A DNA stretch of 64,000 nt from the NCBI RefSeq assembly GCF_046119375.1, contig NW_027365966.1, positions 1 through 64,000 on the forward strand. The letters run 5' to 3'. Positions 36,868 to 61,599 of this stretch are shown here, one piece after another (within the stretch, counting starts at the first letter, position 1; each line of letters opens with the position of its first letter). Both the position numbers and the translations under genes were made by a program. This stretch comes from Phyllobates terribilis. Its lineage: Eukaryota. The notes under the pieces are model-generated. The model ran no database searches. It was not told the origin of the DNA and worked only from the letters and a program-made list of their open reading frames with translations.

Positions 36868-37983
36868 GTTAAAACGGATCATCATTCTAAATTAAAAAGA
36901 ATTTTCTAATTATTAAACATATAATCTACGAAAAAATTGAAGAAATATCGGGATGTTCGTAAGAGGACTCTTCCATATTTTTATATAGAGGCTTATCAGG
37001 TGAGGACGGTGCAAATTCGTCACAGCGGTTGATTCATTTTGATTAAAAAAGCAATTTAGACGTTGCGATACACGCTCACACCCCACCCCCATTCCCTATT
37101 TGTTTTTTCAGTTTCCTTCTTCCCACATACACCTTCTCATTCTCTCACAATTTTGTTGTTCTTCGTTTCACATCGTATAAAAAAAAGTTCGAAAACTAAC
37201 AAATTATTCCTAAAAGACATCAAACTTACTGGTTTCACAATTACTTGCACTTTTTCGGTTGATCAAAATGTTTTCAAGCCAAGGAGGAGACAAATCCCCT
37301 GTTCTAATTGTCAAAGTTGTTGAGAAATCAAACCCTAATCCTAGGTTTACTTTTCGTTCGTTTTTTCGGCATGCAATAGTGTTTTTCACTGAATCGTAAG
37401 TGATAAACATTATTGATGTTCTTCAACAAATATTTCGTTAGTGGATTTGCTATTGTTAAGCTCGATTTTGCTATTTAAACATGTAAAACCCACCGATACT
37501 AGATTTTGTTAATGTTGTTGTACACATGTAAAAATACTCTGTTGTTTGTTGATGTGAAATATTTTTGGAACCAGTTTATGCCAGAAAAAAGAAAGATGAA
37601 CATAAAAAAGTTATTTTCGCAGAAGACAAGGGCAAAGAACAACAAAGTAAAACAACTCTAGTTGTCTATAAAGCTTCGAAAGAACCAGATGGTGATAAAA
37701 ACTATATATATGTTGTGATTCATACTGTCAAGTTACGTGTATTTTTATTTTTAAATCTAAATCCCTTTTTGTTTTGAATTGTTTTCACTTGCTGAAGAAC
37801 AAAAAGCCTGAAGTCAAAAGTTGAAAAGAAATCAAAAGGTAAAAATTGAAGTGCATTCTGTTATCAGGTTGTAGTGCACTTCTCATTTAGGTTAAAGTGC
37901 ACTTCTCGTTAAGAAATTAACTTACAGAGTGTAGTTCTACTCTTCGCAATTGTAAACTTATATTCATGACATTAAGGTTCTGA

Positions 37984-38880
37984 TTTTAGCTCGAAGTACA
38001 CTCTGTTTAGAGTGTTCAGTGCACTTCTCGTTTATCTAGAAGTGCACTCCTCTATTAGAATAAAGTGCACTATCTATATTTTACATAGTGTGGTTCTACA
38101 CTTTAAGAAAATTGTAAAACTGATACTTCCTGGAATTGCACTTCTGTTTTTAGATCGAAGTGCATTCTGTTTAGAGGGTTTAGTGCACTTCTCGTTTTAT
38201 CTCAAAGTGCACTCTTGTCTTGGAAATGAAGTGCACTATCTATATTTTACCGTGTGGTTCTACACTTTAGAAATTGTAAAACTTATACTTCTTGACATTG
38301 CACTTCTATTTTTAGCTCGAAGTGCACTTCGTTTAGAGGGTTCAGTGCACTTCTCTTTTATCTTGAAGTGTACTCCTGTCTTAGAAATGAAGTGCACTAT
38401 CTATATTTTACAGAGTGTGGTTCTACACTTTACAAAATTATAAAACTTATACTTCCTAAAATTGGACTTCTGATTTTAGCTCGAAGTGCAATTGTTTAGA
38501 CAGTTCAGTGCACTTCTCGTTTATCTCGAAGTGCACTCCTCCCTCGGAATGAAGTGCACTATCTATATCTTACATAGTGTAGTTCTATACTTTAGATCGA
38601 AGTGCACTCCTGCCTTAGAGGGTTCAGTGCACTTCTCATTTATCATGAAGTGCACTCCTTCCTTAGAAAGAATTTCACTATCTATATCTTACAGAGTGTA
38701 GTTCTACACTCTATAATTTTAAACTTATACTTCCTCAAATTGCACTTCTGATTTAGCTTGAAGTGCACTTTGTTTATAGATTTCTGTGCCCTTCTCGTAT
38801 ACCTTGCAGTGCACTTCTCATTAATAAAAATGAAGTGCACCCTGTATATCTTATCATACTGCAATTCTACTCTTTATAAG
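37984..38880 (+). repeat. Tandem array of ~163-bp units rich in (A)GTGCAC(T)
   Basis: Unit starts TTTTAG(C/A)TCGAAGT(G/A)CA at ~37984, 38148, 38310, 38474, followed by truncated units at ~38591 and ~38750. Confidence 0.88.
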
Positions 38881-40932
38881 TTTAAAAATTATACTTCCTG
38901 ATGGTGTCCTTCTCATTTAACTCAAAGTGCCCTTTGTTTTTTTAGGTTGTAGTGCACTTCTCTTTTACTTGAAGTGCACTACTCATGAAAAAAATAGGTG
39001 CACTTTGTGTAACATACAAAGTGCAGTTCTACTCTTTATAACTTCAAAAAAATACAGTAAACTTCAATGAAAAAAAAGTTCAGCAAAATACACTTGTATA
39101 TTTTTTGTAAGTAACACTATTGTGCTATATATTTCTAATATTTTAATTATGTCTTTGTAGGAAAAGCGAAAAACCAAAGGACAGAGAGGCTACAAATTGC
39201 AGAATCACACAACATATACATTGATTTCGAACACAGTGTAGAGGAAAAGCCAGTTACAAAACAAAAGAGACGTGGGTCTATTAGCGTCCTTTGCTCCATG
39301 TTAAGGGGATTCAACGAAGCACAAAAACAAGTTGTTAGGAACATGGGGTTTGAACAACTCTTTTCTTGGAATATAGAGACATTGTCATATATGTTGTGTG
39401 ACTGACTTGTAGGTAAGTTTGATGCAGCAACTTGTTCATTAGGAATGGGAAATGGCCGGCTAGATATAACAATAAATGATGGCATCTACAACAGTATCTA
39501 GGACTGCCCAAAGATGACGTGAATTTCAAACTTTGAACTCAAACTCAAACAAAGTGAAAGCTTGGAAGTCCACTTTCCCCAATAGTAAATTTGTTCTTTA
39601 CTCTGATGTTGTAAGGAAACTTAATGAAAATGTTAATGTAGACAACTCTTTGCAATAGATCTTGTTATTTTTCTTTTATTCTATTATAATTGAGAAAACA
39701 GCCAATGACAATGTGTCATCGAAACTCATCAATTGGTTAGACAGGACACATGGTGATGATCTGACTAATTATAATTGGTGTCGTTTATGTTGATTGAGGC
39801 TATGTGAATTAAAAATTGACTATAGTGAAGAATCAAGGACTAGTAAAGAGAAGAGTCATGTCGAAGAAACTAAGATAAACTATCTAGATAAGTACACTTC
39901 AAAAAGATATGGCCTATGGGTTAAAAAAGTGCACTCTTTCTAACAGTAGAAGTGCACTTCGTTTTTTATATATGAAGTGCACGGAATTCATATTTAAGGA
40001 AAAAAAATTGGTTCTCAACTGCACAAATTTGGTTTATGATGTATTTTTTTTCACATTCATAGCAGGCCACTGGGGGAGAATCAAGGACTAGTAAAGAGAG
40101 GAGTCATGTCGAAGAAACTAATGTAAATTGTTTGGATAAGCACACTTGGAAAAGATTTGGGTTAAAAAAGTGCACTCTTTCTAACAGTAGAAAGTGCACT
40201 TCATTTTATATATTGTGTGCACTAAATTCATATCTACGAACTTATTTTTGGGTTCTCAACTGCACAAATTTGGTTGTCTTTTATGATGTTTTTTCCCTCA
40301 CTCGTAGCAGACCACTGGAGGAGGATCTTCTGCTAGTGTTTCAAAGAGGTTGGAGGGTAAAACTGATTCCGAAACGACGACCAGTGATAAGCCTTCTTCA
40401 CCAAAGAAGCCCCGAATTGAAGGTGACATGAATCCCTTGGAAACAAATAAAAAAATCAAAGAGAGCATAAATGTCGGTGTAAATGTTGGAAAGGTAATTA
40501 TTTACATATTTTGATTGTAAATTAATAGACTGTAAATGTATATTTGTAGTAGTGCATTACATATATGAATAATGTGCACCCCCTCACACAACGAAGTGCA
40601 CTAACTTTAAAGAAATTCAACTGCACTGCTAAATTTTTGATATAATACACTTCCACTGTCAAGACAAAAAAGTGCACTTCATGTATGAAAGAAATTGCAC
40701 TCTATATTACCATTGAAAATACACTCCCTTCTATTTTTATGAATTGCATACGATTCATTTAATTAAAGATTTTCTCTTGTTCTCAACTCCAACATTTTTA
40801 GGCTAAAAATGTATTGTTAATTTGTAATTCATAGCATATCTCTGATGAAGCGACAAGGATAGCAGGTGATAAACCTTCTTCACCAAAAAAGCGCAAAATT
40901 GGTGGAGACATCAATCTTCAGCAAAATAAATT

Positions 40933-41721
40933 TGTTGGTTATATGAACTAGCCTCTTAGTTCATACAACTAATAATGCCTTTGTTTTAATTATAACAAAA
41001 TATCCTTATATACTAATGTGTTCATTGAGTGAGATATTGCAGGAGAACCATAGACCTTCAAGTTAATTAGGTGATTTACGCATGGAAATCAACAAGCTTA
41101 AGTGTAGGAGCAAGAGCGAGTCTAGCAAGAAGGATAGCGCTTAATGCGCTTAACCAGGAGCAAGGGAACCAAACATCACAGGAGGGAATCGAGTAAGAAG
41201 AGTGAGGGAACCGAGCACTTAAAGGCTCAAGCATCATACCAGATGGACGCGCTCAAGGGAACCGAGTGCATTGAAGGGAACCAAGCGCGTATAAATAGAA
41301 AGATATCTTATAAGGCGCTATTAAGGAAAAGAATTTGATACGCGGGAACTACCAGATTCGAGATCTTGTTTGTTAGAGTGACTTCGTTATCTTAATCAGT
41401 TAGTTAAGATTTTATTTATTGTTTTAATCTAGCTTTTCGATAATTAGTTCCCGGTGATTATGCCATAGTATAAATAGTATAGATTATCTTTCAAAAAGTT
41501 GTTGTTGAAAGTGCTGAGAGTTAGTACATTTTGATTTAGGACTTAGGCAATAGTTAGGAGAGTTTAGGAAGAAACTAAGAATTGTGTTTTTGCCTAACAG
41601 TTGTAAGCCCTACAAGAAATCAAATCAATAATTGTTTTGGAATTCATTGTTTACTTGTTCCTAGCTTTATTTCCGCACAAAGTTGTAGTCTTTAGTTAAA
41701 GCTAAGGTTCCACGATCCACA
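40933..41721 (+). repeat. Sirevirus 5' LTR
   Basis: Starts TGTTGG and ends ...CCACA just before the PBS. Contains the hairpin TATGAACTA-gcctct-TAGTTCATA (40942-40965), repeated GGGAACC(G/A) motifs and TATAAATAG (~41469). The start position is inferred. Confidence 0.65.
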
Positions 41722-41723
41722 AT

Positions 41724-41735
41724 TGGTATCAGATC
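41724..41735 (+). promoter_or_regulatory. Primer binding site, tRNA-iMet type
   Basis: TGGTATCAGATC, 11/12 match to the canonical TGGTATCAGAGC, 2 nt after the LTR end. Confidence 0.85.
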
Positions 41736-41835
41736 ATGATCCAATTCAAATACGACAATGAAGAACTCAGAATTCAACCTCGGTATGTCCCTGAACAAGC
41801 CTCATCAACTTTGAGAAGGAGAACTAGATTGGTGG

Positions 41836-44800
41836 TTGGGAGTGCACACGATGTTCATTCAAACTCAAGACTACCAATGCTGGAAGATCATAGAGCTTGG
41901 AGACGAAGTGCTTCCAGAGTTAAAAGAAAGAAAGGATTGGCAACAGGAGTACTATGCCAAGATGGAGAAGAATTCAAAGGCTCGACAACTGATTCTGTGT
42001 GGACTCACTCGCACAGACATTGACAAGGTCATTGACATACAAATGGCCAAAGACATATGGGAAGCTATTATCTCCATACACAGAGGAAGCAAAGACCAGA
42101 AGGATACCAGAAAATTTACGCTTCAAAAGGAGTTTCAATCATTCAAACAACTTCCTGGTGAAAGTGTGTCAGCCTGCCAATCGCGCTTCACAATTTTGAT
42201 CAACAAATTAACTGCCTCTGGTGTGACGATTCCCCCTTCAGAGCAAACACTGGCAGTCATCTACGCTATGAGCGGTAAATTCGAGCTCACTCGAAGAATC
42301 GCCCTCATGTCTCCAGACTGCAAGAAGCTTCCGGTGGTTTATATGTTTGGCAAGTTCTTCGACAAAGAAAAAGCTGATTTGTTAAAGGGCTTACAAGTGA
42401 AAGAAGCCACTGGAACCGCGCTGAAGCTCACAAAGGTGCTTGAGAAGATGAAAAACAATGACGGCGAAGAGGATGAGGACGATGATACAGAAGTTGATCT
42501 CATGACAAAGATGGTCAAGAAGTGGTTCAAGAAGAGAGTTGAACCAGGAGAGTCATCATCTTCAGCTAAGCGTGATCTCAGGGAGTACACATGCTACAAT
42601 TGCCAGGAGAAAGGGCACCTTGATAAGACGTGCACCCATCCAAAGGTGGAAGCCACTGAAAAGAAGGCGCTTTTTGAGCATGAGGAGAAGAGGACGATGA
42701 AGCTGACCTTCACGAAGGATTCCAAGGCCAATGTCTCATGAACGATGCATAGGCCCTTTCCTGTGAGGTAAAACCACTTGACACCTTTCCTAATCGCCTA
42801 AACTTTCTTGAAAAGAAAGACCTTATTAATATGATTAAAGGGTTGTTTGAAGATACTGAAACTTTAGAGTCTCAAATTACTGAATATGAAGAGGAAGTCA
42901 TTGAATTACATAGCGAGTGTCTAGATCTGTCCACTAGGCTAGCTAATAAAGAAAAGGCCTTAGTAAAATCTAGGGAACTGAGCTTAACGACAAAATCTTG
43001 CAAGGACTACAATGGTAATCAATCTCAAGAGGGATCGTCAAAGAGCTGAGAGTCCAAAGTAGAAAGCGACTTAGGGCTTATACTTGCTAAGATCACCGAC
43101 TTAACTGAATCAATTAATAAGAACACGATGAACCAAACTGTCTTTGTGAGGTCTAGACCTGGATTAGGATATGACTCAGACATAGATTCTTCTAAGTGCT
43201 CGAGTGCTAATGAGAAGCTCATCAGAGAATTAAGTGAAAAAGCAGAGACCTTAGACAAGGCCCTTCAAATCTGTAGAAGCAAGAATGAATTCTTAGAGAA
43301 AAAGGTTAAGGCACTTGAATAACCATCAGGGGATAAAAATTACTGGTTTCAAAGGGAAAAGGCTCATAAGATGTATGTGAGCCAAGCCCAAGAGAATGCA
43401 GTAAACATATTAGACCCTAATCTTAAGGATAGAAAGTCCTTTAGACCTGGAAAGGGCAAGTATGGTTATGTTAAGTACAATGAATGGTGCAGATTTTGTG
43501 GTAAAAATTGTCACACTATACACTCTTGCAAGAAGAAGCAAGCGCTAAGTAACAAGCCATACAGGTCACCCACTCGCAATACACGTGAAGTGAGTAATCT
43601 GAATGATCCTTCTTACTTAGAGCAAGCCTCTTCACCTAAAGGCCAGAGGCTTGTTCGTAGCCCCTCTCCTAATGCTAACAAGAAATCTAATCCACCCAGA
43701 AAAGCTAACCTTTGACGGGTTTCGAAAGTTTGATTGCTTATTTGTAGGGAAACTTGAGCAGCGAGAACAAATGGTACATAGATAGTGGCTGCTCATGTCA
43801 TATGACCGGAGATAAGGAGAGACTACGAAGTTTTCAAGAATATGATGGTGGAAGCGTATCATTTGGTGACAAGAGAGCTAGAGAAATCACTGGACATGGA
43901 AAGGTACATCTCAATGACAAGATAGATATCCAGATGGTGAACTTTGTGCAGAGCCTTCGCTACAATCTCCTAAGCATCGCTCAACTCTGTGATGAGGGAC
44001 CAAATGAGGTGACTTTCAGTACTTCAAAGTGCTTTGTGAGAAGCGCTACTGAAGAAGTCATTTTAAGGGGAAAGCGAGTTAATAGCATGTATATTTTTGA
44101 CCCCAGCTACATCCCAAAGAGTCACCTTAGCCTTGCTACAATAGAAGATCAAACCGCATTGTGGCATCAACGTCTAGGGCATGTCAATCTACACCTCTTA
44201 CACAAGTTACATGCAAAGGAGCTAGTCTGAGGCTTAACTCTCATCAAGATAGAGAACATGACACACTGTGCTAATTGTGTCAAAGGCAAGCAAATCAGGA
44301 GCTCGTTCAAATCTAAGTCAGACATCACAACAAAGAAGCCCCTCGAGCTCCTTCACATGGACCTCTGTGGGCCAATGCGCATTCAAACCCTGGTTGAGCA
44401 CGTTATATCTTTGTGTCATCGACGACTATTCCAGGTTCACATGGACGTTATTCCTGCGCTCCAAGGATCAAGCCTTCTTTCTCTTTATCAAGCTAGTAAC
44501 CCTACTCGAGAACTCTCTATCCCTAAAGGTGCGCTCTATAAGATCAGGCCATGGAACTGAATTCGAGAATGGCAATATGTTGAGCTACTACATTGAAAGA
44601 GGAATAGCTCACAATTTCTCAGCCCCTAGAACTCCATAACAGAATGGAGTAGTTGAAAGAAAGAACAAGGCGTTAGTAGAGATGGCACGCACTATGCTAA
44701 GCGGAGTCTCCCCCTCACTTTGGGCTTAAGCAGTGAACACAGCGTGCTACATTACCAACATAGCCCTTCTACAACCTTCACTAGGCACGACTCCATACGA

Positions 44801-46760
44801 GCTGATCAAGGGATATCCTCCAAGCATCTCTCATTTCAAGGTTTTTGGATGCAAGTGCTATATACTGAACAATGGAAAAGACAACTTGGGCAAGTTCGAT
44901 GCACGAAATGATGAAGCCACCTTTCTTGGCTATGTCCCATCAAGTAAAGCATACATGGTGTTCAACCAGAGAACAAGAACTTTTGAGGAGAGCATACACG
45001 TGGTGTTTGGTGAAGGCACGTTCCGTTCTCCTCCGTCAAATACCTCTAATCCATTCCCAGAAGTTGCCCTCATATAAGCACCTTCAGAAAATGATCGAGC
45101 CCCTCCTCCTCAAGCCCAGAATCCACTCGCCCCTCCATATATAGCCTCATTTCTCTCAGGTCCTGACTCAGATAGTGATGGCGAAGGGCCTTCTCATTCA
45201 GACACTGTCCAGACCACAACACCTCCAACTAGAACCTTTCAACAAAGAGGTGCTCAGCCCCCAAGGAACATGCTCACTCATGTACACTCTGTAATTCACA
45301 CTCGCTCTTGCGTAGCTCAACTAGCACATCCAGAAGTGATCGCTGAAGCACTTGATGAAGCCGCTTCTTAGACTATCCTATATGCCTTTGACACTTTCGT
45401 CTCACTCACTGAGCCTAAGAACATCAAAGAGGCCATCCTTGATCCATATTGGGTGGCTTCCATGCAAGAAGAGATTCATGAGTTCGAGCGGAATCAAGTC
45501 TGGCGCCTAGTTCCTAAGCCCTCTAATCGCACGATCATAGACACTCACTGGTATTTTAAACAAGCTTGATGACTTAGGAGCCGTGGTAAGGAACAAAGCG
45601 CACCTAGTAGCTCAAGGGTACAACCAACAAGAGGGGATTGACTATAACGAGACCTATGCTTCAGTCGCTCGACTAGAGGCTATTCGTCTTTTGATAGCCT
45701 TTGCCTCACACAAGAACTTCAAGCTATTTCAAATGGATGTGAAGACGGTCTTCCTCATTGGTGTGCTCAATGAAGAAGTGTATGTGAAACAGCCCCCAGG
45801 CTTTGAGGACTCAAACCACCCTAAGCATGTGTATTTCCTGGACAAGGCAACGCTTGTATAGAATATCAAAAACGTAATGAGCAGTAAGTTCAACATGAGT
45901 ATGATTGGGGAACTCAATTTCTATCTCGGCCTTCAAGTAGTGAAAAAGGATGATGCATTCAAATCCATCAACAAAGTACTTAAGGGAGATCATCAAGAAG
46001 TTTGGGATGGAAAAATAGCAAGCCCCTTCACACTCTAATGTCCACAGGCACTAAGCTCGACGCTGACCTTCACGGCCCAAAGGAAAAACAAGATGCTCTT
46101 AGAGGTATGGTAGGATCTTTGATGTATCTAACCGCCTCTAGGCCTAATATTGTTTTTGTAGTGAGTCTATGTGCAAGATTTCAATTTGATCCAAGGGAGT
46201 CGCATGTAGCTATCATCAAGAGAATCTTTTCGCTACTTAAAAGGGACTGACAACTTGTGTTTATGGTACCCTAAGAACTGCGATTTTACCCTTTTTGGAT
46301 ACACAGATGCTGACAATGCAGATTATCTCATTGATCGAAAGAGCACCTCAGGTATGGATCAATTCCTAGGGCCTTGCCTTGTTTCTTGGGGCTCTTGCAA
46401 GCAATACTCAGTAGCCGTGTCCACCACCAAGGCAGAATACATAGTGGTTGATTCCTATTGCGCTAAACTCCTATGGCTCAAGCAACAACTCAAGGACTTT
46501 GGTATTTCAATGGGCTCGATTGAAATATGATGTGATAACACTAGCACGATCAATCTCTCAAAGAACCATGTGCATCATTCTCGAACTAAGCATATTGATG
46601 TGCGTCATCACTTCCTTCAAGACAATGTGGAGAAGAAGAACATAGAGCTCACCCATTGTAGGACTGAGGATCAAATAGCAGACATTTTCCACCAAGACCT
46701 TGAACAAGGAACCATTCATCAAACTCAGACTTCACTTGGGATTGATCCCCCTTCATTAAG
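41836..46760 (+). pseudogene. Copia gag-pol (gag, protease, GAG-pre-integrase, integrase, RT, RNase H), many stops and frameshifts, RT core deleted
   Basis: CYNCQEKGHLDKTC; CRFCGKNCHTIHSC; WYIDSGCSCHMTGD; LWHQRLGH; LELLHMDLCGP; DDYSRFTW; [21 protein letters not shown]; RKSTSG...SWGS.KQ.SVA.ST..AEY; HSRTKHIDVRHHF. Confidence 0.92.
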
Positions 46761-47750
46761 CATTCTCCCTCAATGTAAGCCTCTTCCCTCAGACTTATGT
46801 AAGATTGTTGATTCTTTTAAACTTGGAACTTAGGACTAATACATGCGTGAACTTAGCATGTACTCTTAAAAGGTATACGTCATTCGCATGCTCTGTGTGA
46901 TGCTAAATTATAAACGCTTGTTAGGCCCTTCTAGGATTGTACTGTTGCTTGCTAAAATTTGATTCTTATGCATGCTCTTCATTTTCAAGTCATGATATAT
47001 AAGCAGATGCTCACTTCTTAACCATATGATCCAAGCCCCTAGATACGATTCTTGCTTATGAGTCAGTCCTTAGCTAGATCTTGGTGTCACGTTCCATATC
47101 ACTAAATAAGCTCAACTGAAATATTCACCGAGATGACAAAGAGCCTACCCATAAATGCTTATCACTTGTTGTATTTAAAAGAGCTTCTATGTCCCTGTGT
47201 GTGATTAATTATGTGCTTAAGTGAGTTAAAACAATGCACCAAGTATGGGAACTGAGACACATCACTTAAAAATGATAGGGACCGAGTAGTATGAGAAACG
47301 ACAAGCGCAGATCAAGCGAATATAGACATGGGGACCAAGAATTCATGGGGACCGAGAAACCGAAAAAGGGGTGAAGCACAGAATAGAACATGAACTGAGC
47401 ATGGGGGACCGACGGAATCTTAGGGACCTGAGCCTCTCAACAGCCGCCTATTTTATAGGTAATCATCACTCGCCAATCCCAACGACCACTTGCTTTTGCG
47501 AAGATCAAGGCTTCGGATAATAACCGATTTAAAGTCGTTCGGATTCGACCGTTCAACACCCTCTGTATATACCTCTCGTCCCAGATTCAGACCTCCTTTA
47601 CCGCTTTCACACTATTCATCACTTACATAAATTCTCTCTCTCATCTCTCTCTCTCTCACACACACAAAGCCTACTCTCAATCTCTGCAATGACCAACCCT
47701 TGAACATTAGCGCATAACAATGGGCCGAGTACCTCAAGTACAAGACGTTC

Positions 47751-49327
47751 ATGGAAAACATCGCCACCGCCTCCTCAGCACCATCGTCCACCTCACAAGC
47801 ACCTACTCCAGTGACTGCATCCCTCAAATCCAACCCCCACAGTCTCGGAGAAACAGCCCACACCACCACATCGTCTTCACCTCCTCCTCCACCTACCACA
47901 AAAATCCCCTCACACCATACCTCATATGCACCAATGGAGGAAGACCCACAACCCAAAGAGCCCATCCACTCCATCTCCTCCACCACTCCAAAGGCCTCTT
48001 CTCCACCTCCACCGAACATACACCAACACCTCAATACACAAAGAATAAAACCCTCTAGCCCTCGCTCTTACCTCTCCAACTCTGACCCTCACACTCCCCG
48101 GCCTCTCCTACTCATCAAGTCTCACACAAAAGGCCTCTCGACACCACTCCCTCTTCCACCACTCATAAACGAGCCAAAGGGCTCCCATCCAAGGAGATCG
48201 TCACCACTGAAGCCGACTCCTCCTACAGTCTCCCTCCGGCGCACGGAAACTTCTCAACGAGGGTAGTTATCAAGCTGATCATCATCGTCCAAGGGTTTTG
48301 GAGCACCCTCAGCCCTACAGAGTTTGACGTTGCTGCCACAATCGTGTTACTCGAGCGGACACGCTGGTCCGAACTGTCGAGCCATTTTCCATGGACCTGG
48401 ATGAGATGCGTAAGTTCTACATCGCCCTCGTACCAATGCCCCCATCCCCAGGTCAGCCATACTCAGTAGCTCAGATCCCATGGGTGACGAGCCAAAGACG
48501 GTGAACATCAAGTTGGTCTCTAGGGTGCTCGATCTACTAACATGGGAAGGGTACGCCTCTCTCCCCAAGAAGGACCAGCCGCCGGTCAAGTCATAAACGA
48601 TCAAGCTCCTAGCGGGCAAGGTGAGGTTGAAGTAGATCAATACCAATATGCTCAGCTTCGGCATGAAACTGCTCCACTTCATCATGTTGCACAACATAAT
48701 ACCGAGATAGGAGAAGCGGGATACAATGACGATTGCAAATGCTTGCCTACTCAGGGAAGTGATCGAAGGTAGTATCATCGACACTCCGCACCTTATTATA
48801 TTGCACATGCTGACGGTAAAAATGAACAAGAATCATGCCCTTCTCTAACCCCACATCGTCAAGAAGATAATGATAGAGTTGGGGATCTACAAGCCTGTAA
48901 AGGAGACTGCTCTCGAGAGCATAATCACAAAAACTGGGCTGCTTAGGTTGGTGAAATACGTCAGTATGAAAGCACCTATCGAGAAGCTGAAATTAGGACC
49001 CACTCCCAGAGCTGAGCCCAAGCCTGACCCCAAACCCAAGCCTGACAGCATAGCCCCTCCAAAATCTGAACCCAGACCTTAGCGCATGAAGAGACCCTTG
49101 AAGGAGAAGAAGCCGCTTATGCCGTCAAAATGAGCCCTGAGGAGATTCAGCTCTGCACTTTAGAGGTTGTGCTTCAAACAAATAGGCACTTGTCAGGTCT
49201 GCGCATGATGACCGATTGGCACCTTCATCACATGAAGGCACTTATGATCGGGCCGCTCAAAGAGGGTTGTGAAGACAAGTATGAAGATGAGTCCATTAGG
49301 AAAATCCAGAGCACCTCAAAATTCTAA
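47751..49327 (+). pseudogene. Sirevirus env-like ORF, disrupted
   Basis: Lies between pol and the PPTs. Ser/Pro/Thr-rich N-terminus, then fragments such as ID.PHLIILHML...PHIVKKIM.ELG, and a C-terminal coiled-coil-like region. Confidence 0.65.
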
Positions 49328-49519
49328 CTGTATTTTTTGCTCTTTTTGTTTAATTAATGATAAGTATGCCTTGAATCACTTGCATGCTTGCTCTAGAACG
49401 TACTGAGATAGGGATTGACTTTCTATGTTTTCTTTTGCATCACATATTCATTCCTCTAGAAGGCATGCATGTACTACTCTTTATTTTTCCCTGTTTCATA
49501 TTAAGCACAACTTTTTACA

Positions 49520-49740
49520 TGATGTCAAAAGGGGGAATATTACAAGCATATGTGTTATTTAATTTAGGGGGAACTAATACCCATGGTAAGTTAAAGGGCG
49601 ATGAGTGCTACTCGTTCATTGGTTAAGGGGGGATGAAAGCAGTGCATTTTCAAGAGGGGGTGCTGAGATAACTGTCAAATTTACATCACAGGTTGTTAAC
49701 CATGGGATTACAAAGAAGGCAATGCATTTTCAAGAGGGGG
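49520..49740 (+). other. Multiple polypurine tracts (Sirevirus signature)
   Basis: GATGTCAAAAGGGGGAA (~49521), TTAGGGGGAA (~49564), TAAGGGGGGA (~49624), CAAGAGGGGG (49651 and 49731). Confidence 0.7.
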
Positions 49741-51181
49741 TGCTGAGATAACTCCTAAAAAACAAATTGATGATGATGACTTGAAGTGTGTGCCACAATT
49801 GTCTGCTTTCAAAAAATTATCTTTTAACGACAGGGCAATTGATGTTAAGAGTAGATTCACTGATAGGAGAGAGGAGTATTCTCATGGATTTATGATCCAC
49901 TTAAAGATGAAAGGTATGACTATAACTAAGAAGATATCAATTTTACTTGATTTATTTAATTATCTTTTGTTGTTTTAAAATATGCACCTCCACCCCAGTT
50001 AGAAGTGCATTTATAATACAACTTTATTGCATGATAAGTGCACTTCTAAAAATAGTGTTCGTGTGTACTTACATGTGGTTGGGGGAGCACACTTCTATAA
50101 TATTAACAGAGCACTCTATATTTCGCTGGATTTTCTATTTCCATTACACTTGTTTGTTTTTCTGTGTAAAATTGCAATGAACTGTTACATCATGTTGCAT
50201 GTTCACTTATATGGGATAAAGTAGTGCACTCCAATAAAAAAATATTTAAAGTGAACTTGAATGTACAATACATGTGCACCTTTTATTTTTTACTAAATTA
50301 TTTTACTATTATTTCAAACATGGAGAGGGTTTGCGACATCCAAGACCATCGTCTTGATCGGAAGGCATTTCAGACACTTGACATAAACACTTATGTAGTT
50401 GATGATATCTTAACTGTTTGTGCTAGGTTGATGAATAATAATGACTTTTTCAAGAGTGTTGATTCTCCATCAAATTTTTTTTGCCTAATATTACCCTCGG
50501 TGAGTGTTTTGTTTTTGTTTACTTTGTTTTACTTGGTATTTATTCTTTTGTTTCAATTTAATTTAAAATAGTGTTTTTTAAATTTCAGATTGTATCAATG
50601 TTTGAAAGAAATGCAAACGAGAATACAAGGAAGCAATGGTTTGTGGAAGGGATTCTAAATGAGATGTCCAATTGTCAGTGGTTGAAGCCAAATATAATAG
50701 AACTTGTACGATCTTTTTTATATTCAATTTTTTAATGTTTTAATAGATTTGAATGTTTTACACTACTAAAGTGTCTTATTCTTCTTCCTGTTTACAATTA
50801 ATGTTCCCGTGCTACATAGATATACACTACTCCATTGTAGAATTTATTGTAAAATTCTACAGAATTGATATTCTTGATAGTAATCATGATGGGACAATGA
50901 AGAAGTATGGGGATATATACCTTATGAGCTAATTAGTTTTTTTATGTTTTCTCTATATTTCAATTTTCTTTTACTAGTTTTTTTGCATATTTTAATGATA
51001 ATTAAAATATATTTTATTCAAATACACTGCTAAAATATATTATGGGAGTGCACTTGTAAAAAAATAAATAGCACTGCACCTCCATGCAGTCTCGGAGTGT
51101 ACTTTTTTAATAACTTAGTGCACATTATTTGCAAAAATAATGTGCACTAAGTTATTAAACAAAAACCATTGAGCTTTTTTA

Positions 51182-51650
51182 TTTTAGCTCGAAGTGCACT
51201 CTGTTCAGAGGGTTCAGTGCACTTCTCATTTATCTCAAAGTGCACTCCTCACTTAGAATGAAGTGTACTATCTATATTTTACAGAGTGTCTTCTACACTT
51301 TAGAAAATTGTAAAATTTATACTTCCTGAAATTACACTTCTGATTTTAGCTCGAAGTGCACTCTGTTTAGAGGGTTCAGTGCACTTCTCGTTTATCTCGA
51401 AGTGCACTCCTGCCTTAGAAATGAAGTGCACTATCTATATTTTACAGAGTGTGGTTCTGCACTTTACAAATGGTAAAACTTATACTTCCTGAAATTGGAC
51501 TTCTGATTTTAGCTCGAAATGCACTCTGTTTAGAGGGTTCAGTGCACTTCTCGTTTCTCTCAAAGTGCACTCCTATCTTAGAAATGAAGTGCACTATCTA
51601 CATTTTATAGAGTGTGGTTCTACACTTTAGCTCGAAGTGCACTCCTAAAT
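51182..51650 (+). repeat. Second array of the same ~163-bp GTGCAC-rich unit
   Basis: Unit starts at 51182, 51344 and 51507, then a truncated copy; same consensus as 37984-38880. Confidence 0.9.
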
Positions 51651-53126
51651 TAAATAGCAGTGCAATTGTAAATTAAAATAGCAGTGCACTTCCACGTAGT
51701 CTGAGAGTGCAATTTTTTAATAACTTAGTGCACATTCTTTTTTTTGGCAACACACTTAATTTTACTGCCGATGTTTGCTCAGATTCTATTAGATGCATGA
51801 AATTATTATATGTATTGATTAAATTTATTTTTTCAGAAAAAATGTTTATCCACTTTTTGGAAGTTCACAAATTATTTTCAAAAGCTGCATATATTGAACA
51901 AAGAGAACCTGAACGCCTGGCAATGCACTAGAGGAATTCAAGAAAAAAACGAGACTGTGGAATTTATGTAATGATGTATATGGAAACATACATGAGAAAC
52001 AGACTTTCTAGTTTCTTCACGGATCTCAATAAGAATAACAAGTCCGAGATGAACACAATTCGAGTGAAGTATACTTATGCTATTCTCAGATATATTGAAA
52101 ACAGACTTGTAGATCATGTGATATTATCGTCCAAAAGGCAAAGGAATATCGCATTTTCATGGAAGCAAAGGGTGAAAGAAGCTGAGGAATTTGCAAGAAA
52201 AGGAAACAATGAGGTAGGGCTTGAAAGACTGAGAAAGAAGATAAATGATCGACAAGAAGAAGACTAGGAAAGAATAGTTTGATTTCATTTGATGTTAGAC
52301 ATTTGACAAAAAAGTTACTGCATATGTAAATATAGTTAGTTTTTTATTGACATAGTTGTTTTGAATTACGTTGTTTTTGGGACTAAACTTGGTGTTTTAT
52401 ATAAAAGTAGGCCACTTCCTTAAAAGTGAAGTGCACACCATCTCATAATATAGTGCACTTACTTGTATTTATGAAAAGCACTACTACATGTGTAGTCGTG
52501 CACTTCATATTTTCTTGTGTTTTAAAACCCCAATTTATGATGTGTTTAAAAGCAAGAAGAGTCCTTTTGAAATACATTGTATATATATTTTTTTCGTTTC
52601 TGCATTTGTTGTATTTGAATAAAGGTTGCAACACATAAGTGGAATATTTGAATAAGAAACCACACTATCCAAATGTTTTACCAATCCAAAAAAAGGAATT
52701 AAAAATAAACAAACACTATACATATTAAAAAAGTACACTTGAAACGAATGGATAACAACATTCTGATGTAGGGTATTAAGAAGTGCACTCTATTCAATGT
52801 CATTAACCGTTAAATATTAAATATAAGTGAAGTTGTTCTATCTTTTGAATAGTTGACTTGAAAGGACACACATCTAATAGTAAACTCACAATACGGGTTT
52901 GGTAAATCAAGATCTTGGAAAATGGTCGTATTTACTTTATGGATATTTCCCATAACCATTCAGCTTTAAGCACATATGAAAAAACCGAGCCATAACTTTC
53001 ATTGAATAGCACATTTGACCACAAACTCATCAACTATATCCTTCTAATATAAATAACACAACTAACCACTTATCTACTAAGTCCATCTACTATCATTTCC
53101 ATAATTTGTTTTTTTTACCAAAAACC

Positions 53127-53600
53127 ATGTCTAAAAATGTAAGAGTGATTTGCTTGATTTCCACATATGCATGCACCGAAAATTCCAGTTTTGACCTCAG
53201 TTGTGAATGCTTTCAGTGCAAAAATAAGATCTTAGAATTGTCAAAAAATCCAACCAAAAACACTACAAAAAATACACTCCAGCCAAAAACACTCCTGGGG
53301 GCAGCAGAAGTCCCGGAATCATTAGTAATCAAAGATACTGCTGCAACTATTGAAGAAGCTGAAAACTACCCACATAACAGGGGAAAGGTTTCATCATTCC
53401 AAATATTTATGTGCATGTGTCCTTTCTCCAATTATTTCTATCTTTTTTCTGTGCATGTGTCTTTTAGTTTTTGTGCAGTTAGTTATGTTTTTGTGTCCAA
53501 ATATTTTCAGCTATGTAGTTGCCTCAAAGAAGGAAGTGGTCATGGAGGTTACTGACCAACTACCTCTTGAGGTTAAAAAAACAAATTTGTAGTGAGAATA
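53127..53600 (+). pseudogene. Accessory gene X1 of unknown function (paralogue of the B3 gene N-terminus)
   Basis: ATG 53127: MSKNVRVICLIST...CECFQCKNKILELSKNPTKNTT...AAEVPESL, aligning with 55902-56170. Followed by a GT-AG intron and a second exon (~53511) with no recognisable B3 domain. Confidence 0.55.
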
Positions 53601-55901
53601 TAAGCCTTATGGAGGACCCGTATGAGTATCAAAATATTATGGAGTAAACCACGATGACTACATGACCTGGGATCCCAGTATGATGATTTAGACTAGATAT
53701 ACTTGTGGTTATATGATGTGGCATGGTGCTTGAGAAACTGAGTTGTATTGTAGTTTAGTAGATATAGTTAGTTTAACTCTTATTTTGTGGTTTTAGATGG
53801 AACTGTAATGAATATGGTAAGATGTGCATCTAGCTATGTAAAAAATATGCATGTGTTTCAAATTATCACCTTGACATTTATGGGTAATCATATTTTGGCC
53901 TCGTCTTAAAAAGTGAAGTACACTTCATTGTCTTTGGGGAGTGCACCATCTCGTAGTGTAGTGCACTTCATTGTCTTTGGGGAGTGCACTACTATATGTG
54001 TAGTCGTGCACTTCATATTTGATTGAAAGGTGAGGTTCACTCCCTCACAAAAAAGATGCATTTCAACAAAATGGAAACAAGATGCATTTCGACAAAATGG
54101 AAACAAAGTACACCCCAGAGTGCACTATTTAGGTTATTGACAGTGCATAAAATAACATTATAAAACATAAAAATGTCATTAATTAAAAACTACATCTTAG
54201 TTTTTTTTGAAATACGTTGAAGTATGGTAAAGCCAATATTGTGGGAAGTTTCTAACATCCCACAGTAGTGCATACAAACTTTTCTCTTAAAGTGTCAGTT
54301 GCTTTAAACGAAACCTTTCATACCTTTTGTCAAACTGTTATTTAAGAAAACATTTTGTTAGCACAATACAAAACATAAAATAAAAAATTTTCACCGATAA
54401 TTAAAAAAGTCCACTATGATAGAAAAAACTATTAGATTAGATAAATCAGTAATAATATCCTCACAACAATCATTGAGTTCCATTGTTGGTCACTTTCATT
54501 GATTTCCCGTGTTTCGGGATTTAATGTTATATCACTCACAAGAAATTGTCAGGTGTTGAAATCTTCTTTCATGCGATTGTAGTGACTCCTTAGATAATAT
54601 TTACTAAAAAAATCTCAAATCGCGTGGTAAAAAGGTAGCCCTAAGAATATACCAATTCTTCTTACTATACTTTCCATAGCGCTCTTGATATGAAACACAA
54701 ATATTAAATAATGTCAAACCATCTTCTCGCATGAAAGGGGTCATCCTTCATAAAAATAGTATAAAAGAAGAAATTATTAATCATTCAAAGATGCAGTAAA
54801 TATAATAAAAAAATATAGAAAAATGGTCCATCCTCAATAGACTAGTAGTGCACTTATAAGTGCAAAGGTAGTGCACTTCTCAGTGCATAGGTAGTGCACT
54901 TCTCATATGACTGTTAGTTCACTTCTCATAGAACTGGTAGATCACTTCTCAGTACCCTGTTAGTAGTGCACTTAACACCGAACTGGTAGTTCACTTCTCA
55001 GTACACCGGTAGTGCACTACGTAGTGCACTCCAAAAAGAAACACTTGTTACTTTATTGTTATATTTATTTTATACTTAAAGTATCCTATCTTTTCTAAAA
55101 TTAGTACTACATGTTTGAAAACAAAAGTATAATTGATCGATACACATACCTCTTGAATTGAAAAAAAACTTTGTTTTTAATAGTAGAATGAAAGTTGAAT
55201 GAAAAGTATGTTGGTGTTTTTTTCTTAAAATGGATAGAACCCCCTTTTATAACGTGTTTAAAAGTAAGAAGAGTCGTTTGAAATTTACTATAAATGTATA
55301 TATGCTTTTTTGTTTCTGCATTTGTTTGTAACTGAACCAAAGCTGCAAACATATAAGTAGTATCATTGAATAAGAAACCACATTATTCAATATTTGACTA
55401 CTCAAAAAAGCATTAAAAATGAACTAAACGGTGTACTGTAGTGCACTTTGTTCAATGTTTCACTATGTATGGGTTAGGTAAACGAAAAAGGATAAGAGCA
55501 CTTCTGATTTATTAAGGAGTGCATTGTAGTGTTATATTTTTTCCAATAGTAGTTGACTTGAAAACACACTGAAGGGCACTTGTAACGAAAAAATAGAGAA
55601 AACACTTCTGATGTACTGTAAAAAAAAAAGCAATGCACTTTGTTCAATGTTTCACCATGTATGGGTTAGGTAAAATCAGATACTATTAGAATGGGCATAA
55701 TTTTTTTTTGTAGATTCCCCATAAACCAACCCTCCTTAACTATTTCAGCCTTATGTCAAATCTGAAACAGAGCCATAATTTTTCATTGAATACCACATTT
55801 GACCATAATTCATATACTATATCCTTCTAATATAAAAAACACAACTCACCCCTAGATATAATACATCAATTTACTATCATTTTTACTAAATCTACCAAAC
55901 C

Positions 55902-56537
55902 ATGTCAAAAAGAGTGATTTGCTTGAGTTCCACAGATGACTCCTCGAGTACTTACTACAACACTGATTCTAGTTCTAACCGTAGTTGTGAATACAATGAG
56001 TGCAAAAGTCAGATAGTGGAATTGATAAAAACTCCAACCAAAAACACTACAAATAAAACATTCCAAATAAAAATATTCCTGGAAGCAGCAGAACTCCCAG
56101 AATTATTAGTAATCAAGATACTGCTACAACTATCGAAAGAGCTGAAAACTACCCACATAAGAGGGAAAAAAGTTTCATAATTGTCATGCATAAATCCTCT
56201 GTTCAAGGAGATTGTTGTCTAGTAAGTTTTAATCTATTGTCTTGTTTTATACATAAGTAAAAAACTATTGAATATAGTATTGTTTTATTTTTAAGAAATA
56301 CCACACAAACATGCAGATAAGTACTTGAAAGACTTCAAAAACAATGAGATTGCCCTCTACAGTGGAAACAAATCTTGGGGTATAGTAGTCAAACACAATC
56401 AGGATACATACAGACTAGGGAAAGGGTGGAGGTCCTTTGTTCAAGATAATGAACTACGCGTGAATGATGTTTGTTTATTTCAGCTAATGACTATTGAATT
56501 TGGTGTTGTGTATGATGTGAAAATTTTCAGGGCTTAG
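55902..56537 (+). CDS. MULE-borne B3 DNA-binding-domain gene (2 exons; needs one single-A correction to be in frame)
   Basis: Exon 2 (56296-56537): IPHKHADKYL...EIALYSGNKSWGIVV...YRLGKGWRSFVQDNELRVNDVCLFQL...VKIFR, the REM/VRN1-type B3 pattern (IP..F/H...L...W.V...GW..FV.DN.L...DVC.F). Exon 1 runs from ATG 55902 to a donor at 56109 or ~56171. Confidence 0.7.
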
Positions 56538-57259
56538 TGGTTTGATTTGTTTGTTGTGATTCTCTAAGTTTGTGTTGTGGTGTTCTTATTTTAAGTTAGT
56601 ATGTCATTTGTTGTGCTTCCGAACTACTAATTTTATGGGTTAAGTATATGTTTTTTTACATAATTACACTAGTGTGCACCTTGAGTTGAATGAAAAGTGC
56701 ACTTTTACGCTGATGGGTGGTGCACTCCGCAATAAAAATGATAATTAGGAATGGAATTAATTGTAAAATAGTGTGCTCATCCGAGAAATGATAGTGCACT
56801 ATAAAAAATTAATACTTGAGAGAACTGTGAATTTTATATAGACAGTGCAAAATTCAAATAAAATGTTAGTGCATTACTCTTTGAAGACTAGTGCACTTAT
56901 CACATAAAATGGTAGTGCACTAAATCATTGATGGTAGTGCACTTCTCATGCATGATGGTGCACTTAATGGTGAAAAGTTAGTGAATTGTCCTTTTAATAC
57001 ACAAATAATGCACTTCTAAATGAAGAATGTTGCACTAACGAATATGAGTCAACTTATATGTTTTTACACAATCTTTAAAAAATAACTATGGTGTTGTGTT
57101 GTTCTTCATAAGCTAATATTCGAGTTTGGAAATATCAATACTTTCATTTCTTAACTAGAAATGTAAATGATGTTCTCTAACAAATATGAGTCAACCTTTT
57201 TTTAACATAATTAAACTATAAAAGATAACTATGGTGTTGTGTTGTTCTTCATAAGCTCC

Positions 57260-60045
57260 TTGTAGGTTCTGATGTTATGTCCTTTTTCTCAACATTTAGT
57301 GCACACTCTAACTTGTTTCTTCTCCTTCTTCATTGCTTCCTCTTTCCCACCAATATAACGCTGCCTAGACCCTTTGATTTGTGCTTGCTTCAAAGGATTT
57401 ATTGTTATTCCGGACGGAGCTTTTCCAACAAACCTCTCAAACCTTCTTTCACATGAACATGTGCTACCGGATGTTTTATTTTTTGCTTAAATAGGATAAT
57501 TTGTACTCTCTGATCACTCCCAACAAATAGGACATTCCATTAGTATTGTTCTCTACAACACTATTTAAAGTGTGAAATTCTGACACCAGTTGGAGCAAGA
57601 GCATCTTTCTCTCATCATTTGTGCACACTCTTCATATAAAGAACCATCTATTTCAATAATAGACTTCAACGTTACATCCTTGTCCATATCGGGTTGATGA
57701 ATTACTTGGTAGAGTGTCAATTCCCATACTCTTCATTACTACAAACATGTGCCGGCAAGGGAGACCAGTCTTTCTAGACTTGTTGCAAGAACATATTATA
57801 TCATTGTTAGAGAGCACAACTTTTATAAAATATATCATGTCCCTACTGCCTCTGATCTTGTACAAGTTAAACTCGTTATCCTTTGTTATATCATCAATCG
57901 AACAAGAGAAAATAAATGCGTAAATTTCAGTTTACAACTCCATGAAAATGCTTATAGTGTAAATTGATGCACAATGCTTCTCCATTTTCAACGGTGTCTT
58001 TATCACTGGGTTACATGTGGCTGAATAAAATATAAGTTTTTGTTGCGTGTGCCGCTGTGAATTGATCCCATTGTTGAACATATTCATAACCCTACTAGGT
58101 TCGATCCAGTACCTATAAAATTGTTGAAGAAACTATTTTGACTCTCTAACCTTGATTTTGTTCGAAGCAAGCCACCCATTTTCACATCGTTGAAAAATGA
58201 AGCTATCCAGTAATGTCTAAGGTCAAAAAGATTCTTGAACCATTGTTTGTCCTCCAAACCAACCTCTTTCATTATTGCTAACCATTCTCGCACAAATTGT
58301 TCTCTTGCCAACTCATCATTCCACACAACGTTGTTGAATTTCTTCCTGAAGTCATCATTGTTAGCTATATCTGCATCAACCTTATTTGGTACTTTCATCA
58401 TTATGTGCCACATACAGAAACTGTGAACGCAAGTTGTGAACACTCTTTCAACTACAACTTTGACAGCCGGATCTTGGTCTGTTAGAATGATGTTAGGTTC
58501 ATGTCCCATTGCCTTCTTGAAGTTTGAGAACAACCATGTATAAAAATCCTCATTCTCTTTTAACATCAAGCCTGCAACAAATGTGATTGATTTCTTGTGG
58601 TTGTCTACACCACTGAAAGGGACAAACACCATTTGGTAGTTGAAAAAAAAATTATATTTCTACTTTAGCTTGCTTCAACTATACTTACATTCACATATCA
58701 GTATCACTATCAAAAAAATTGCACTAAATCAGTAAGTTTTGAGTGCACTCCAATTACTTTTGAATGACATCAAGTGCACCTTATAGTAGTTAAAAATTAA
58801 ACCTCAATATACAGTGCACTTTCTATGTCATATGAGTGAACTTTCAAAAGCATTACAAGTGCACTGGCCTTAAAAGTTGAATTTCAAACTTCAGACGAGA
58901 GAGACATGAAGGTGTGCATGTAAAAAAATCTACAAGTTCTATATAAAAAAGTGCATTTTACAAAAACAATAGAGTGCACTACAAATAGGAAAGAAAGTGC
59001 ACTCCACCTAGAAAAAAAGCAGTGCACTACCCAATGATCAAAGAGTATACTGTACATGAATTAGAGGGTTCACTTGTTGAAATGTGCACTCTTTAACAAC
59101 TGTGAAGTACACATAGATAAGTAAACTTAGTGCATTCAGTATCAGATGACAGTGAAGTTCATTTATTTTACACTATTGTTTTTAGTTGAAATATTTTGAT
59201 ATTTTCCTTTTGTTTCCATTAAATATTGATAGATGCGTATTAGGATAGCTTAGCACATGTTTTGTTGTAAATTGAATCATTTGAAACCACATCTCCAAAG
59301 AAGTTGAACCTCTTTCTACTTATCGGTTCCGCCGAGAATAGAGAGCATAAATCATCATCACTGTCGGCTTCATAATCGAAATAAAACCCTCTGAAAATAT
59401 CTTGTTTTTTCTTGAATTTGTCTATTGTTATTGGGCGTCAGCTCCTTCAACATAGGCTTGTAATCCCCTTTTAAAATTCCTAAAATCAAGTATTGTTGCG
59501 CCAACATTGTTGTAGCTCCCTGCAAACTCTTTGTATAACTTGTAGCTCTTTGATACACCCACATTTGCATGAGTACAATTCGTGATAAAATCTTCACAGT
59601 ACGTGTCAGCATCAGTGAGGCGTAATTGAATCTTAGCTATGCATCCACATCTATTTATTATTCTTCTACGTTTGATTTTCTTATTCTTCCTATTCAATGT
59701 TATTCCTTTAAGTGTTGGTGTGCCTTGTGAGCTAGTAGTTGCACTGACTGACTCCTTATTTGAATTACTCATAGCACATGCCCTATTACAAACAATATAT
59801 TTCACATTAACAACACCATCTCTCAACTTCCTCATTGTACTGTGTCGTACTCCAAACTCACATGTATCGGCGTATTTTGTGTAGAATGTAGATGCATCTT
59901 ATATGATCTTAAAGATTTGTCCTATAAAAGGCACAAGTTCTGGTTCACAAGAAGGCTTGTAAAATCCTACTGTACTTGGAGATTCAATTGTTCTAGAGCT
60001 TTCACCAACTTCAGGAGAGACAAAATTTGTATCACAGTAATTCAA
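57260..60045 (-). pseudogene. FAR1/FHY3-type MULE transposase (FAR1 DNA-binding, MULE, SWIM, C-terminal CCHC), disrupted
   Basis: P.IGQ.F...A.TFY..YA...F.VR; YIVCNR...RCGC.AKI; MVFVPFSGVDNHKKSITF.AGL..KE...Y.WLF..F.KAMG..P..ILTDQD.A...V..VF...H.FCMWHIM.K; RT.SR.ESQN.FF; CSC.....G.PCRHMF; RVC...EKGHN.RT. Confidence 0.92.
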
Positions 60046-60079
60046 ATGTCAGTTGTACAATATATCTTATCAAAAATGA

Positions 60080-60900
60080 AGTGCACTTTCTAAGATCCTT
60101 AAGGTACACCATGAGTTGAAATGGAAAAGTGCACTTTCTCCGCTAACAGGTAGTCCACTCTAAAAAAAGAAATGATAAATAGAGATGCATTAATTGTAAA
60201 GTAGTGCACTACTCAGTTGAATGATAGTGCACTTGTCAGCTAAAACTAGTGCACAGTGCAATACGCAAAAATGGAATGACAATACACTTCTCATAAAAAA
60301 TTAGTGCATTACTAAGTTGAATGATAGTGCACTTATCAAATGAATGGTGGTCCACTTTTCATTAAAGAGAAGTGCAATACGCAAATGGAATGACAATACA
60401 CTCCTCATTAAAAAGATTTGTGCACTACTCAGTTGAATGATAGTGCACTTATCAAATGATTGATAATGCACTTTTCCATTTCAACTCAGAAGTGCAATTT
60501 CAGAAAGTATAAGTGCACTACTCAATTGAATGATAGTGCACTTGTCAGCTGAAACTAGTGCACTTCTCATTGAAAAGAGAAGTGCAATACACAAAAATGA
60601 AATGACAATACCCTTCTCATTAAAGATTAGTGCATTACTCAGTTGAATGATAGTGCACTTATCAAATGAATGGTAGTGCACTTTTCATTGAGGAGAGGTG
60701 CAATACGCAAATAGAATGACAGTACACTCCTCATTAAAAAGATTAGTGCACTACTCAGTTGAATGATAGTGGACTTATAAAATGAATGATAGTGCACTTT
60801 TCATTAAAGAGAAGTGCAATACGCAATGGAATGACAGTACACTCCTCATTAAAAGATTAGTACACTTCTCCGTGCAATGATAGTGCATTTCTCATTGAAG
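60080..60900. repeat. Irregular tandem array of GTTGAATGATAGTGCACT / AGTGCAATAC / ATTAGTGCA modules upstream of the transposase
   Basis: Repeated CTCAGTTGAATGATAGTGCACTT, GAAGTGCAATAC and GAATGACA(A/G)TACACT modules. Confidence 0.85.
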
Positions 60901-61599
60901 AGTAGTACACTATCATGAAGATAAAACAATTAGACTCGAAAGTGACAAAAGCAGAATGCAAAAATCAAATTGCAGTTACACACGAAACAAAATGTACATT
61001 TGTCTCATTGATGAGGACATTTAAAATGAGTAATGTTGTATAAATCGAAGAATTCATTGAATTGTAAAACGTTGTTTCAAAACAAGTAAAAAAAATGAAT
61101 TCATACTTGTGGATACCCTAGATTTCTCCGCAAAATGTCTTCTTCTACAAAAATATTTTGTTAAAAATGATGTTTATGAATACGCTTTTGTCTCTTGATA
61201 TCAATTCGACTTTGTCGTATTTTCAAAAAAAAATTCGATGTATGAAGCACTTGGAGATAGAAACAACATTTAGCGCGCAACTGAAAATAATGTATTGAAG
61301 ATGATGAATGAAACCACGCGCCTCGTGTTTGATTTTATTGATTATTTTCTCGGGTTTTAAATGGACTGTCTGATCAAAATGAATCTAAGAGCTATGATGA
61401 GTCCGCACATTCGCACAGTTGGGAGGGTCCTCACTGGAAACTTGTTCTTCTTATATAATATTTCCTAAACTTAAATATAGGGATAAAATTAAAAATTAAT
61501 TTAAGATTATCAAAATTTCAGACTTCTTAAATAAGTTGGATCCTCAAATTTTAGCATAATAGTAGGTAATAGTTTTATTTTTGATAATTATAGGCATAA

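Follow-up and report, generated by a model that had tools for sequence, protein, structure and literature searches.

We analyzed a 64-kb stretch of DNA (positions 1 to 64,000 of contig NW_027365966.1, assembly GCF_046119375.1; hereafter, the window) that contains, at 36,988-61,447, a Mutator-like element (MULE) with several genes and with arrays of a short palindrome, AGTGCACT, in its noncoding DNA. The element encodes a FAR1-type transposase on the minus strand and a Ulp1 protease on the plus strand, both proposed earlier from the sequence alone and both confirmed with Pfam, together with a gene for a B3-domain protein, and it is interrupted by a nested Copia-type retrotransposon (Table 1). 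This copy is dead, all three genes being broken. From its anatomy and that of related elements, we infer that the palindrome is probably bound by an element-encoded protein with an anti-silencing effect, and we weigh below which of the encoded proteins would be the reader of the arrays.

The AGTGCACT octamer occurs 78 times in the window, in every case within 37,873-60,791, and the 7-mer and 8-mer that rank first by count in the window both correspond to this motif. Its GTGCAC core is present 106 times, including 102 occurrences within 36,988-61,447. With the nested retrotransposon taken out and exon-like stretches marked, the MULE part has 11.2 kb of noncoding DNA with 100 GTGCAC sites (8.9 per kb), whereas its 4.6 kb of exon-like DNA is free of them; the density beyond the element borders is 0.10 per kb. 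These densities bear out an earlier note on this DNA, which had described the noncoding part of the element as saturated with a palindrome that is rare in the rest of the window. One-mismatch variants of the motif number 72 in the element and 10 outside. GTGCAC is missing from the first 886 bp and the last 655 bp of the element, and no AGTGCACT-type array is present in the second MULE of the window, at 5888-18785.

The sites are phased. Pairs of the form AGTGCACT-N15-AGTGCACT, with motifs exactly 23 bp apart, are found 20 times, and not once in 100 dinucleotide-preserving shuffles; 43 of the 101 motif intervals measure 22-25 bp, and the other peaks lie at about 46, 70, 93, and 116 bp, that is, at multiples of 23. 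Much information content is confined to A-GTGCAC-T, and a preference for yCT 3' of the motif is weak to moderate (30 versus 9). The motif is carried by at least 5 unrelated repeat units (162/163, 248, 23/46, and 116/210 bp), which have different spacers and the same 8-mer. A 163-bp unit had been singled out previously; such a unit is present, but the basic unit is shorter, since each 162/163-bp repeat consists of seven 23-bp sub-units. Identity within the 162-bp repeat is 97% in the motif columns versus 87% in the remaining columns. The 163-bp repeat in the C48-domain intron of the Ulp1 gene (51181-51630) matches the left-end array with 84-91% identity. Conservation applies to the motif and its register and not to the repeats themselves, and because different repeat units retain one 8-mer while their spacers diverge, the motif appears to be under selection.

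Tandem repeats expand and homogenize by themselves. They are also common targets of RNA-directed DNA methylation (PMC10398659), and the arrays could in principle bind no protein, being either a by-product of repeat turnover or targets or sources of small RNAs. We regard this explanation as very improbable, because unrelated repeat units at eight places have only the 8-mer and its spacing in common, exon-like DNA is wholly devoid of the motif, and a diverged family, described below, has kept the period with a motif that differs at two bases.

Table 1. Features of the element and its borders, in window coordinates.
Feature	Position	Strand	Basis and remarks
Left target-site duplication, TTTTTATATA	36978-36987	.	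Read directly; 9/10 match to 61448-61457
Left degenerate terminal inverted repeat	36988-37045	+	Local alignment to reverse complement of right end
Array 5' of Ulp1 gene	37848-39010	+	23 GTGCAC; includes 162-bp higher-order repeat 37922-38596
Ulp1 N-terminal coding region, candidate DUF1985/PMD-like (VANC-type)	39139-39790	+	Open reading frame pieces, atlas neighbors
Array within Ulp1 gene	39829-40700	+	9 GTGCAC; includes 248-bp repeat
Nested Copia-type retrotransposon, 3'-truncated	41060-49754 (approximate borders)	+	Retrotran_gag_2, Pol_BBD (beta-barrel), gag_pre-integrs, rve, RVT_2
Remainder of Ulp1 gene	49755-52267	+	C48 exons at ~50.4 kb, ~50.8 kb (His/Asp region), and 51932-52264 (Cys, DCGIYV)
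Array in intron inside C48 domain	51048-51740	+	16 GTGCAC
X1	53127-53400	+	Truncated duplicate of B3 exon 1, ~49% amino-acid identity
Two arrays between X1 and B3 gene	53917-55030	+	53941-54120, plus 23-bp array 54833-55030
B3 gene	55902-56537	+	Exon 1 55902-56224, intron 56225-56294, exon 2 56295-56537
Array between B3 stop and transposase 3' end	56674-56965	+	8 GTGCAC
Transposase gene	57290-59898	-	FAR1 59431-59898, MULE 58087-58659, SWIM 57656-57931 (Pfam)
Array in transposase intron, MULE and FAR1 exons either side	58743-59090	+	8 GTGCAC
Array 5' of transposase gene	60081-60900	+	15 GTGCAC; 116/210-bp repeats of 23-bp sub-units
Right degenerate terminal inverted repeat	61373-61447	-	Local alignment
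Right target-site duplication, TTCTTATATA	61448-61457	.	Read directly

This anatomy matches that of the targets of VANC proteins, which are short, dense motifs in tandem repeats, located in the introns of VANB and VANC and upstream of VANA (PMC5735166). Like VANDAL21 and VANDAL6 with their proteins VANC21 and VANC6 (Fu 2013; Hosaka 2017, PMC5735166), the element is a multi-gene MULE with a short, dense, family-specific motif in tandem repeats of introns and upstream regions, and the correspondence extends to the motifs themselves, which begin with AGT and, from one related family to another, diverge at about two bases (in VANDALs, YAGTATTAY versus AGTTGTCC/AGTTGTAC; PMC5735166). Unlike VANDAL21 and VANDAL6, it has a perfect palindrome in a strict 23-bp register, a FAR1-type transposase, degenerate terminal inverted repeats (TIRs), and an extra B3 gene, and a separate VANC gene is absent. 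We consider a VANC-like logic of the element to be well supported by this comparison. Because of the TIRs and the FAR1-type transposase, the label "VANDAL-like" given in the earlier note names that logic, for which the cis-anatomy speaks, and not membership.

The reading that we favor, and hold to be moderately probable, is that the element is a decayed multi-gene MULE of VANC/KIU-like type in which the arrays are read by the VANC-like (DUF1985/PMD-like) domain of the Ulp1 gene. The phased AGTGCACT arrays in introns, in intergenic DNA, and in both gene-upstream regions would then be family-specific sites for an element-encoded protein, and the protein made by an active copy would bind every array-bearing copy, leaving it unmethylated and transcribed. 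The role of reader would fall to the DUF1985/PMD-like N-terminus encoded by the Ulp1 gene, in this view a VANC-Ulp1 fusion of the KIU type, and this N-terminus would bind as an oligomer, which would suit a palindromic site that recurs in a fixed 23-bp register. The B3 protein would be a long-standing extra passenger of the lineage and possibly a second DNA-binding factor.

This reading draws on what is known of VANC proteins, which consist of DUF1985 and DUF287 (PMC5735166). Their DUF1985 resembles PMD-C in structure and is regarded as the part that binds DNA (bioRxiv 10.1101/2024.09.27.615353; PMC13547354), and oligomerization via a coiled coil has been predicted (PMC13547354). The earlier note had treated the Ulp1 and VANC proteins as separate; in Arabidopsis, however, a VANDAL gene that carries Ulp1 (KIU) is a VANC gene that has captured the Ulp1 domain, and it, too, acts via family-specific motifs (review PMC13317346). 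The combination is also reflected in TAIR-style annotations such as "Ulp1 protease family protein (DUF1985)" (PMC5821449).

In the element, the Ulp1 gene starts at ~39.1 kb, contains the Copia insertion, and resumes at ~49.75 kb. The Peptidase_C48 match at 51932-52264(+) scores 25.8 bits (Pfam cut-off 20.7) and lies on the same strand as, and downstream of, the N-terminal region; the other Ulp1 exons are predicted from translations of open reading frames (ORFs). Two in-frame stops (39403-39405 and 39656-39658) and a shift of frame somewhere from 39498 to 39518 split the N-terminal domain into four pieces. For the fragment encoded by 39139-39402 (88 aa), 36 of 100 neighbors in a language-model-based protein atlas carry names, which are DUF1985 (21) or PMD (15) and no others, so that a canonical reader candidate would already be aboard the element. 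We treat this assignment of the N-terminal region as a lead and no proof. Like KIU genes, the element has a C-terminal Ulp1 C48 domain in an accessory gene, a candidate DUF1985-like region upstream of it, and motif arrays in noncoding DNA; unlike them, it is accompanied by TIRs and a B3 gene, and profile searches did not confirm its putative DUF1985. Array motifs TGATGACA and, in 22-bp phase, CATGAACC presumably belong, one each, to two other DUF1985-Ulp1 MULE families of this genome.

Several points weigh against the Ulp1 N-terminal region as the reader. The DUF1985 label derives from the language-model neighbors of a single 88-aa fragment; two shorter N-terminal fragments gave no atlas signal, and searches of the separate fragments against Pfam and the PDB yielded no match. 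DUF287 was not found in the element. The FAR1-type transposase and the TIRs set the element apart from Arabidopsis VANDALs, and B3, which co-occurs with arrays in two families, is a sequence-specific DNA-binding domain as well.

The B3 gene consists of two exons, the second of which encodes a B3 domain (PF02362) at 56295-56534(+) with 49 bits (cut-off 30.1; E = 6e-13) covering profile positions 18-88; the last part of exon 1 encodes the first B3 strand (SFIIVMHKSSVQGDCCL), as it does in relatives. The nearest solved B3 structures are VRN1 (4i1k), NGA1 (5os9), TEM1 (7et6), and RAV1 (1wid). In its fold, its conserved arm motifs, and its match to the profile (E ~1e-5), the domain resembles the B3 domains of plant REM and RAV/NGA proteins; it differs from them in belonging to a small, single-B3, transposon-encoded protein with a low-complexity N-terminus, which forms a clade of its own. 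The gene has two lesions: one A has been lost from exon 1 at 56115-56116 relative to the paralogue X1, and the intron acceptor reads AA at 56293-56294 where AG is expected. Two accessory genes besides Ulp1 had been postulated, and the B3 domain in one of them is real. The other, X1, is not a separate kind of gene: it duplicates B3 exon 1 as part of a 2.78-kb tandem duplication (window 52600-56170, offset 2783 bp), and the second B3 exon is absent after it. Contigs of a related species (organism C) contain joints that skip 2785-2928 bp, for example from 53269 to 56055; some family copies in that species are, accordingly, without the X1/B3 duplication. The B3 gene was not detected in any of the RNA runs searched, and nothing from the one run compared with the stretch (X10) aligned to it.

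Contigs of three species cover 52.9-58.8 kb thousands of times at a likeness of at least 85%. Depth over the B3 part is about that over the neighboring arrays, and the transposase part is covered 5-10 times more deeply. In a set of 5.8 billion proteins, neither the B3 exon nor the Ulp1 N-terminal fragment had a match. An exhaustive HMMER scan, with relatives of at most 49% identity among the cluster representatives, led to a small clade of ~80-residue ORFs with 41-52% identity to B3, which are clearly nearer to it than multi-B3 REM proteins; a scan of metagenomes with the B3 alignment returned only L007, a bacterial false positive. None of the 150 best B3 matches had MULE, FAR1, or Ulp1 parts. 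The plant contigs reached by protein look-up measured 1.5 kb at most. The two-exon structure is common to the relatives L001, L004, and L009-L013, in which exon 1 ends in ...SF-I-x-x-M-K-K-x-F-V-E-G-D-C-R-L and, after a short intron, exon 2 starts with V-I/V-P-F/Y-x-H.

Five relatives (L004, L011, L012, L013, and L014), recovered in two metagenome studies, are copies of one multi-copy family from a plant, with a B3 protein 42-43% identical to that of the element. Their B3 intron contains 4-6 TTCAC motifs at an exact 22-bp period, and up to ~18 copies of AGTTCACAA at 22-24 bp follow directly past the stop codon, so that these arrays, too, are phased, with a 22-bp repeat of (A)GTTCACAA(T). The existence of related families with diverged motifs is thus confirmed for a B3-bearing relative, the motifs of the two families being two bases apart (AGTGCACT versus AGTTCACA). 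The number of array units varies among the five copies, as it does in VANDAL21 repeats. In a third lineage, represented by L006 (B3 46% identical), the repeats are AGTGCAT/AATGCAC. Among the short contigs, repeats with a TGCA core were also seen 3' of B3 relatives at L005:701-1384 (GTGTATGCAGTT) and L006:452-700 (AGTGCATAAATGCACATG).

Because a diverged B3 gene also sits in phased arrays in a related family, B3 is an old, conserved resident gene of such elements. We ruled out a recent Pack-MULE capture of a host gene fragment: the element has a whole two-exon B3 gene with an intron position that is kept in the relative clade, and at least one relative lineage is likewise embedded in phased arrays. 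Residence in array-bearing elements does not, by itself, identify B3 as the reader.

The B3 protein could nevertheless read AGTGCACT, alone or with the Ulp1 protein, in which case a plant transcription-factor domain would have been recruited for self-recognition or anti-silencing. Its fold is a confirmed sequence-specific DNA-binding fold with an IP-x-x-HA-x-x-Y/F arm in common with the NGA1/RAV1/TEM1 class, and its gene groups with other small single-B3 genes of like two-exon structure in a clade apart. Since a family with a 42-43% identical B3 has 22-bp TTCAC/AGTTCACAA arrays, protein and motif have both diverged while the architecture was retained; the AGTGCAT/AATGCAC repeats of L006 point the same way, as does the like depth of the B3 region and its adjoining arrays in related contigs, in contrast to the transposase region. 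On this evidence, a long-resident B3 protein of a Ulp1-MULE lineage present in several plants might be the reader, or a second reader, co-evolving with the motif (AGTGCACT versus AGTTCACAA), a scenario that we put forward only tentatively. The arrays occupy all of the noncoding DNA, so that the position of B3 amid them tells nothing about the binder, and the same element holds a VANC-type candidate reader, next to which B3 is the less parsimonious, and in our view an unlikely, choice. The protein is small, with no evident oligomerization part to account for the 23-bp register. To the two lesions of the present copy can be added that most related contigs also lack the A at the paralogous site 53331, and dN/dS is ~1 among the five TTCACA-family copies; the latter value fits neutral decay of insertions and is uninformative on the active lineage. 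The proposal of B3 as the reader has thus gained a real gene and a diverged B3 family with a motif that differs at two bases and has lost its standing as the sole candidate, and we judge it doubtful overall.

The transposase offers a further candidate. Its MULE, SWIM, and FAR1 domains score 69.7, 20.9, and 32.3 bits, respectively, all over the Pfam cut-offs, and the gene carries single-base indels at 57479 and 57701 relative to nearly all related contigs; related contigs of the transposase region have a loose end at FINPRWTKDA. The AtMu1c transposase alone binds its TIRs and hypomethylates and activates cognate copies (bioRxiv 10.64898/2026.08.24.746577), and the transposase of the element might likewise bind the arrays via its FAR1-type zinc-finger domain, as its own activator and anti-silencer. 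The two largest arrays are subterminal, and one-base variants of GTGCAC occur in both TIRs, 20-50 bp from the tips: GTGCAA on the left (37008-37020) and GTGCGA and GTGCGG on the right (61395-61415). Binding by the transposase is nonetheless improbable, because the outer 886 and 655 bp lack GTGCAC itself, half of the motifs occupy introns and intergenic DNA far from the ends, which is the pattern of VANC and not of terminal binding, and the end arrays are not in inverted orientation. The element does resemble AtMu1c transposase and En/Spm TnpA (bioRxiv 10.64898/2026.08.24.746577) in that an element-encoded protein, here a predicted one, would counteract silencing at repeated sites of its own family; it differs from these systems, in which the sites are terminal or subterminal, in having motif-free termini and sites in internal noncoding DNA.

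As to the borders of the element, the degenerate TIRs described in the earlier note are upheld by a local alignment over ~60-75 bp with a score of 80, versus 41 +/- 6.6 (maximum 61) for shuffles; the 10-bp target-site duplication given there matches at 9 of 10 positions. Immediately beyond the right duplication (61694-62068) lie a 21-bp repeat, at 61877-61928, and an ORF whose peptide repeats an FVQ-type pattern, neither of them related to the motif of the element. We ruled out that the parts to the left and right of the Copia insertion are separate elements, because the Ulp1 gene runs on past the insert and the 162-bp repeat found after it is intronic within the C48 domain. The Copia element has a primer-binding site at 41724-41735, and its polypurine tract region is present twice, at 49635-49673 and 49715-49753. 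Neither a pair of long terminal repeats (LTRs) nor a 3' LTR was detected, and MULE sequence picks up directly after the insert, which suggests that a deletion took away the 3' LTR.

Elsewhere in the window, a tandem array of ~24 units of 21 bp with the core CTATATAATTC (4675-5176) lies ~700 bp to the left of the MULE at 5888-18785 and may be a phased array belonging to it. A further segment, 32001-34000, stands out by a G+C content of 52%, against a window average of 39%, and an AT skew of -0.25.

To our knowledge, the only transposon proteins for which sequence-specific anti-silencing has been shown in experiments are those of Arabidopsis VANDALs and, more recently, the AtMu1 transposase and Spm TnpA. 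The element shows a VANC-like cis-architecture outside the VANDAL setting and joins to it TIRs, a transposase of FAR1 type, a perfectly palindromic site, and a strict 23-bp register. We found no paper describing a B3 gene as an accessory gene of a MULE, and relative to the literature found, the conserved B3 accessory gene, the perfect palindrome, and the strict 22-23-bp register across diverged families are new. Because a diverged family has the B3 gene as well, together with a motif that differs at two bases, the system offers a direct route to the class of the reader and to the co-evolution of reader and site. Should B3 take part, a fold of host transcription factors would have entered the arms race over transposon silencing; otherwise, the element would be one more member of the VANC/KIU group.

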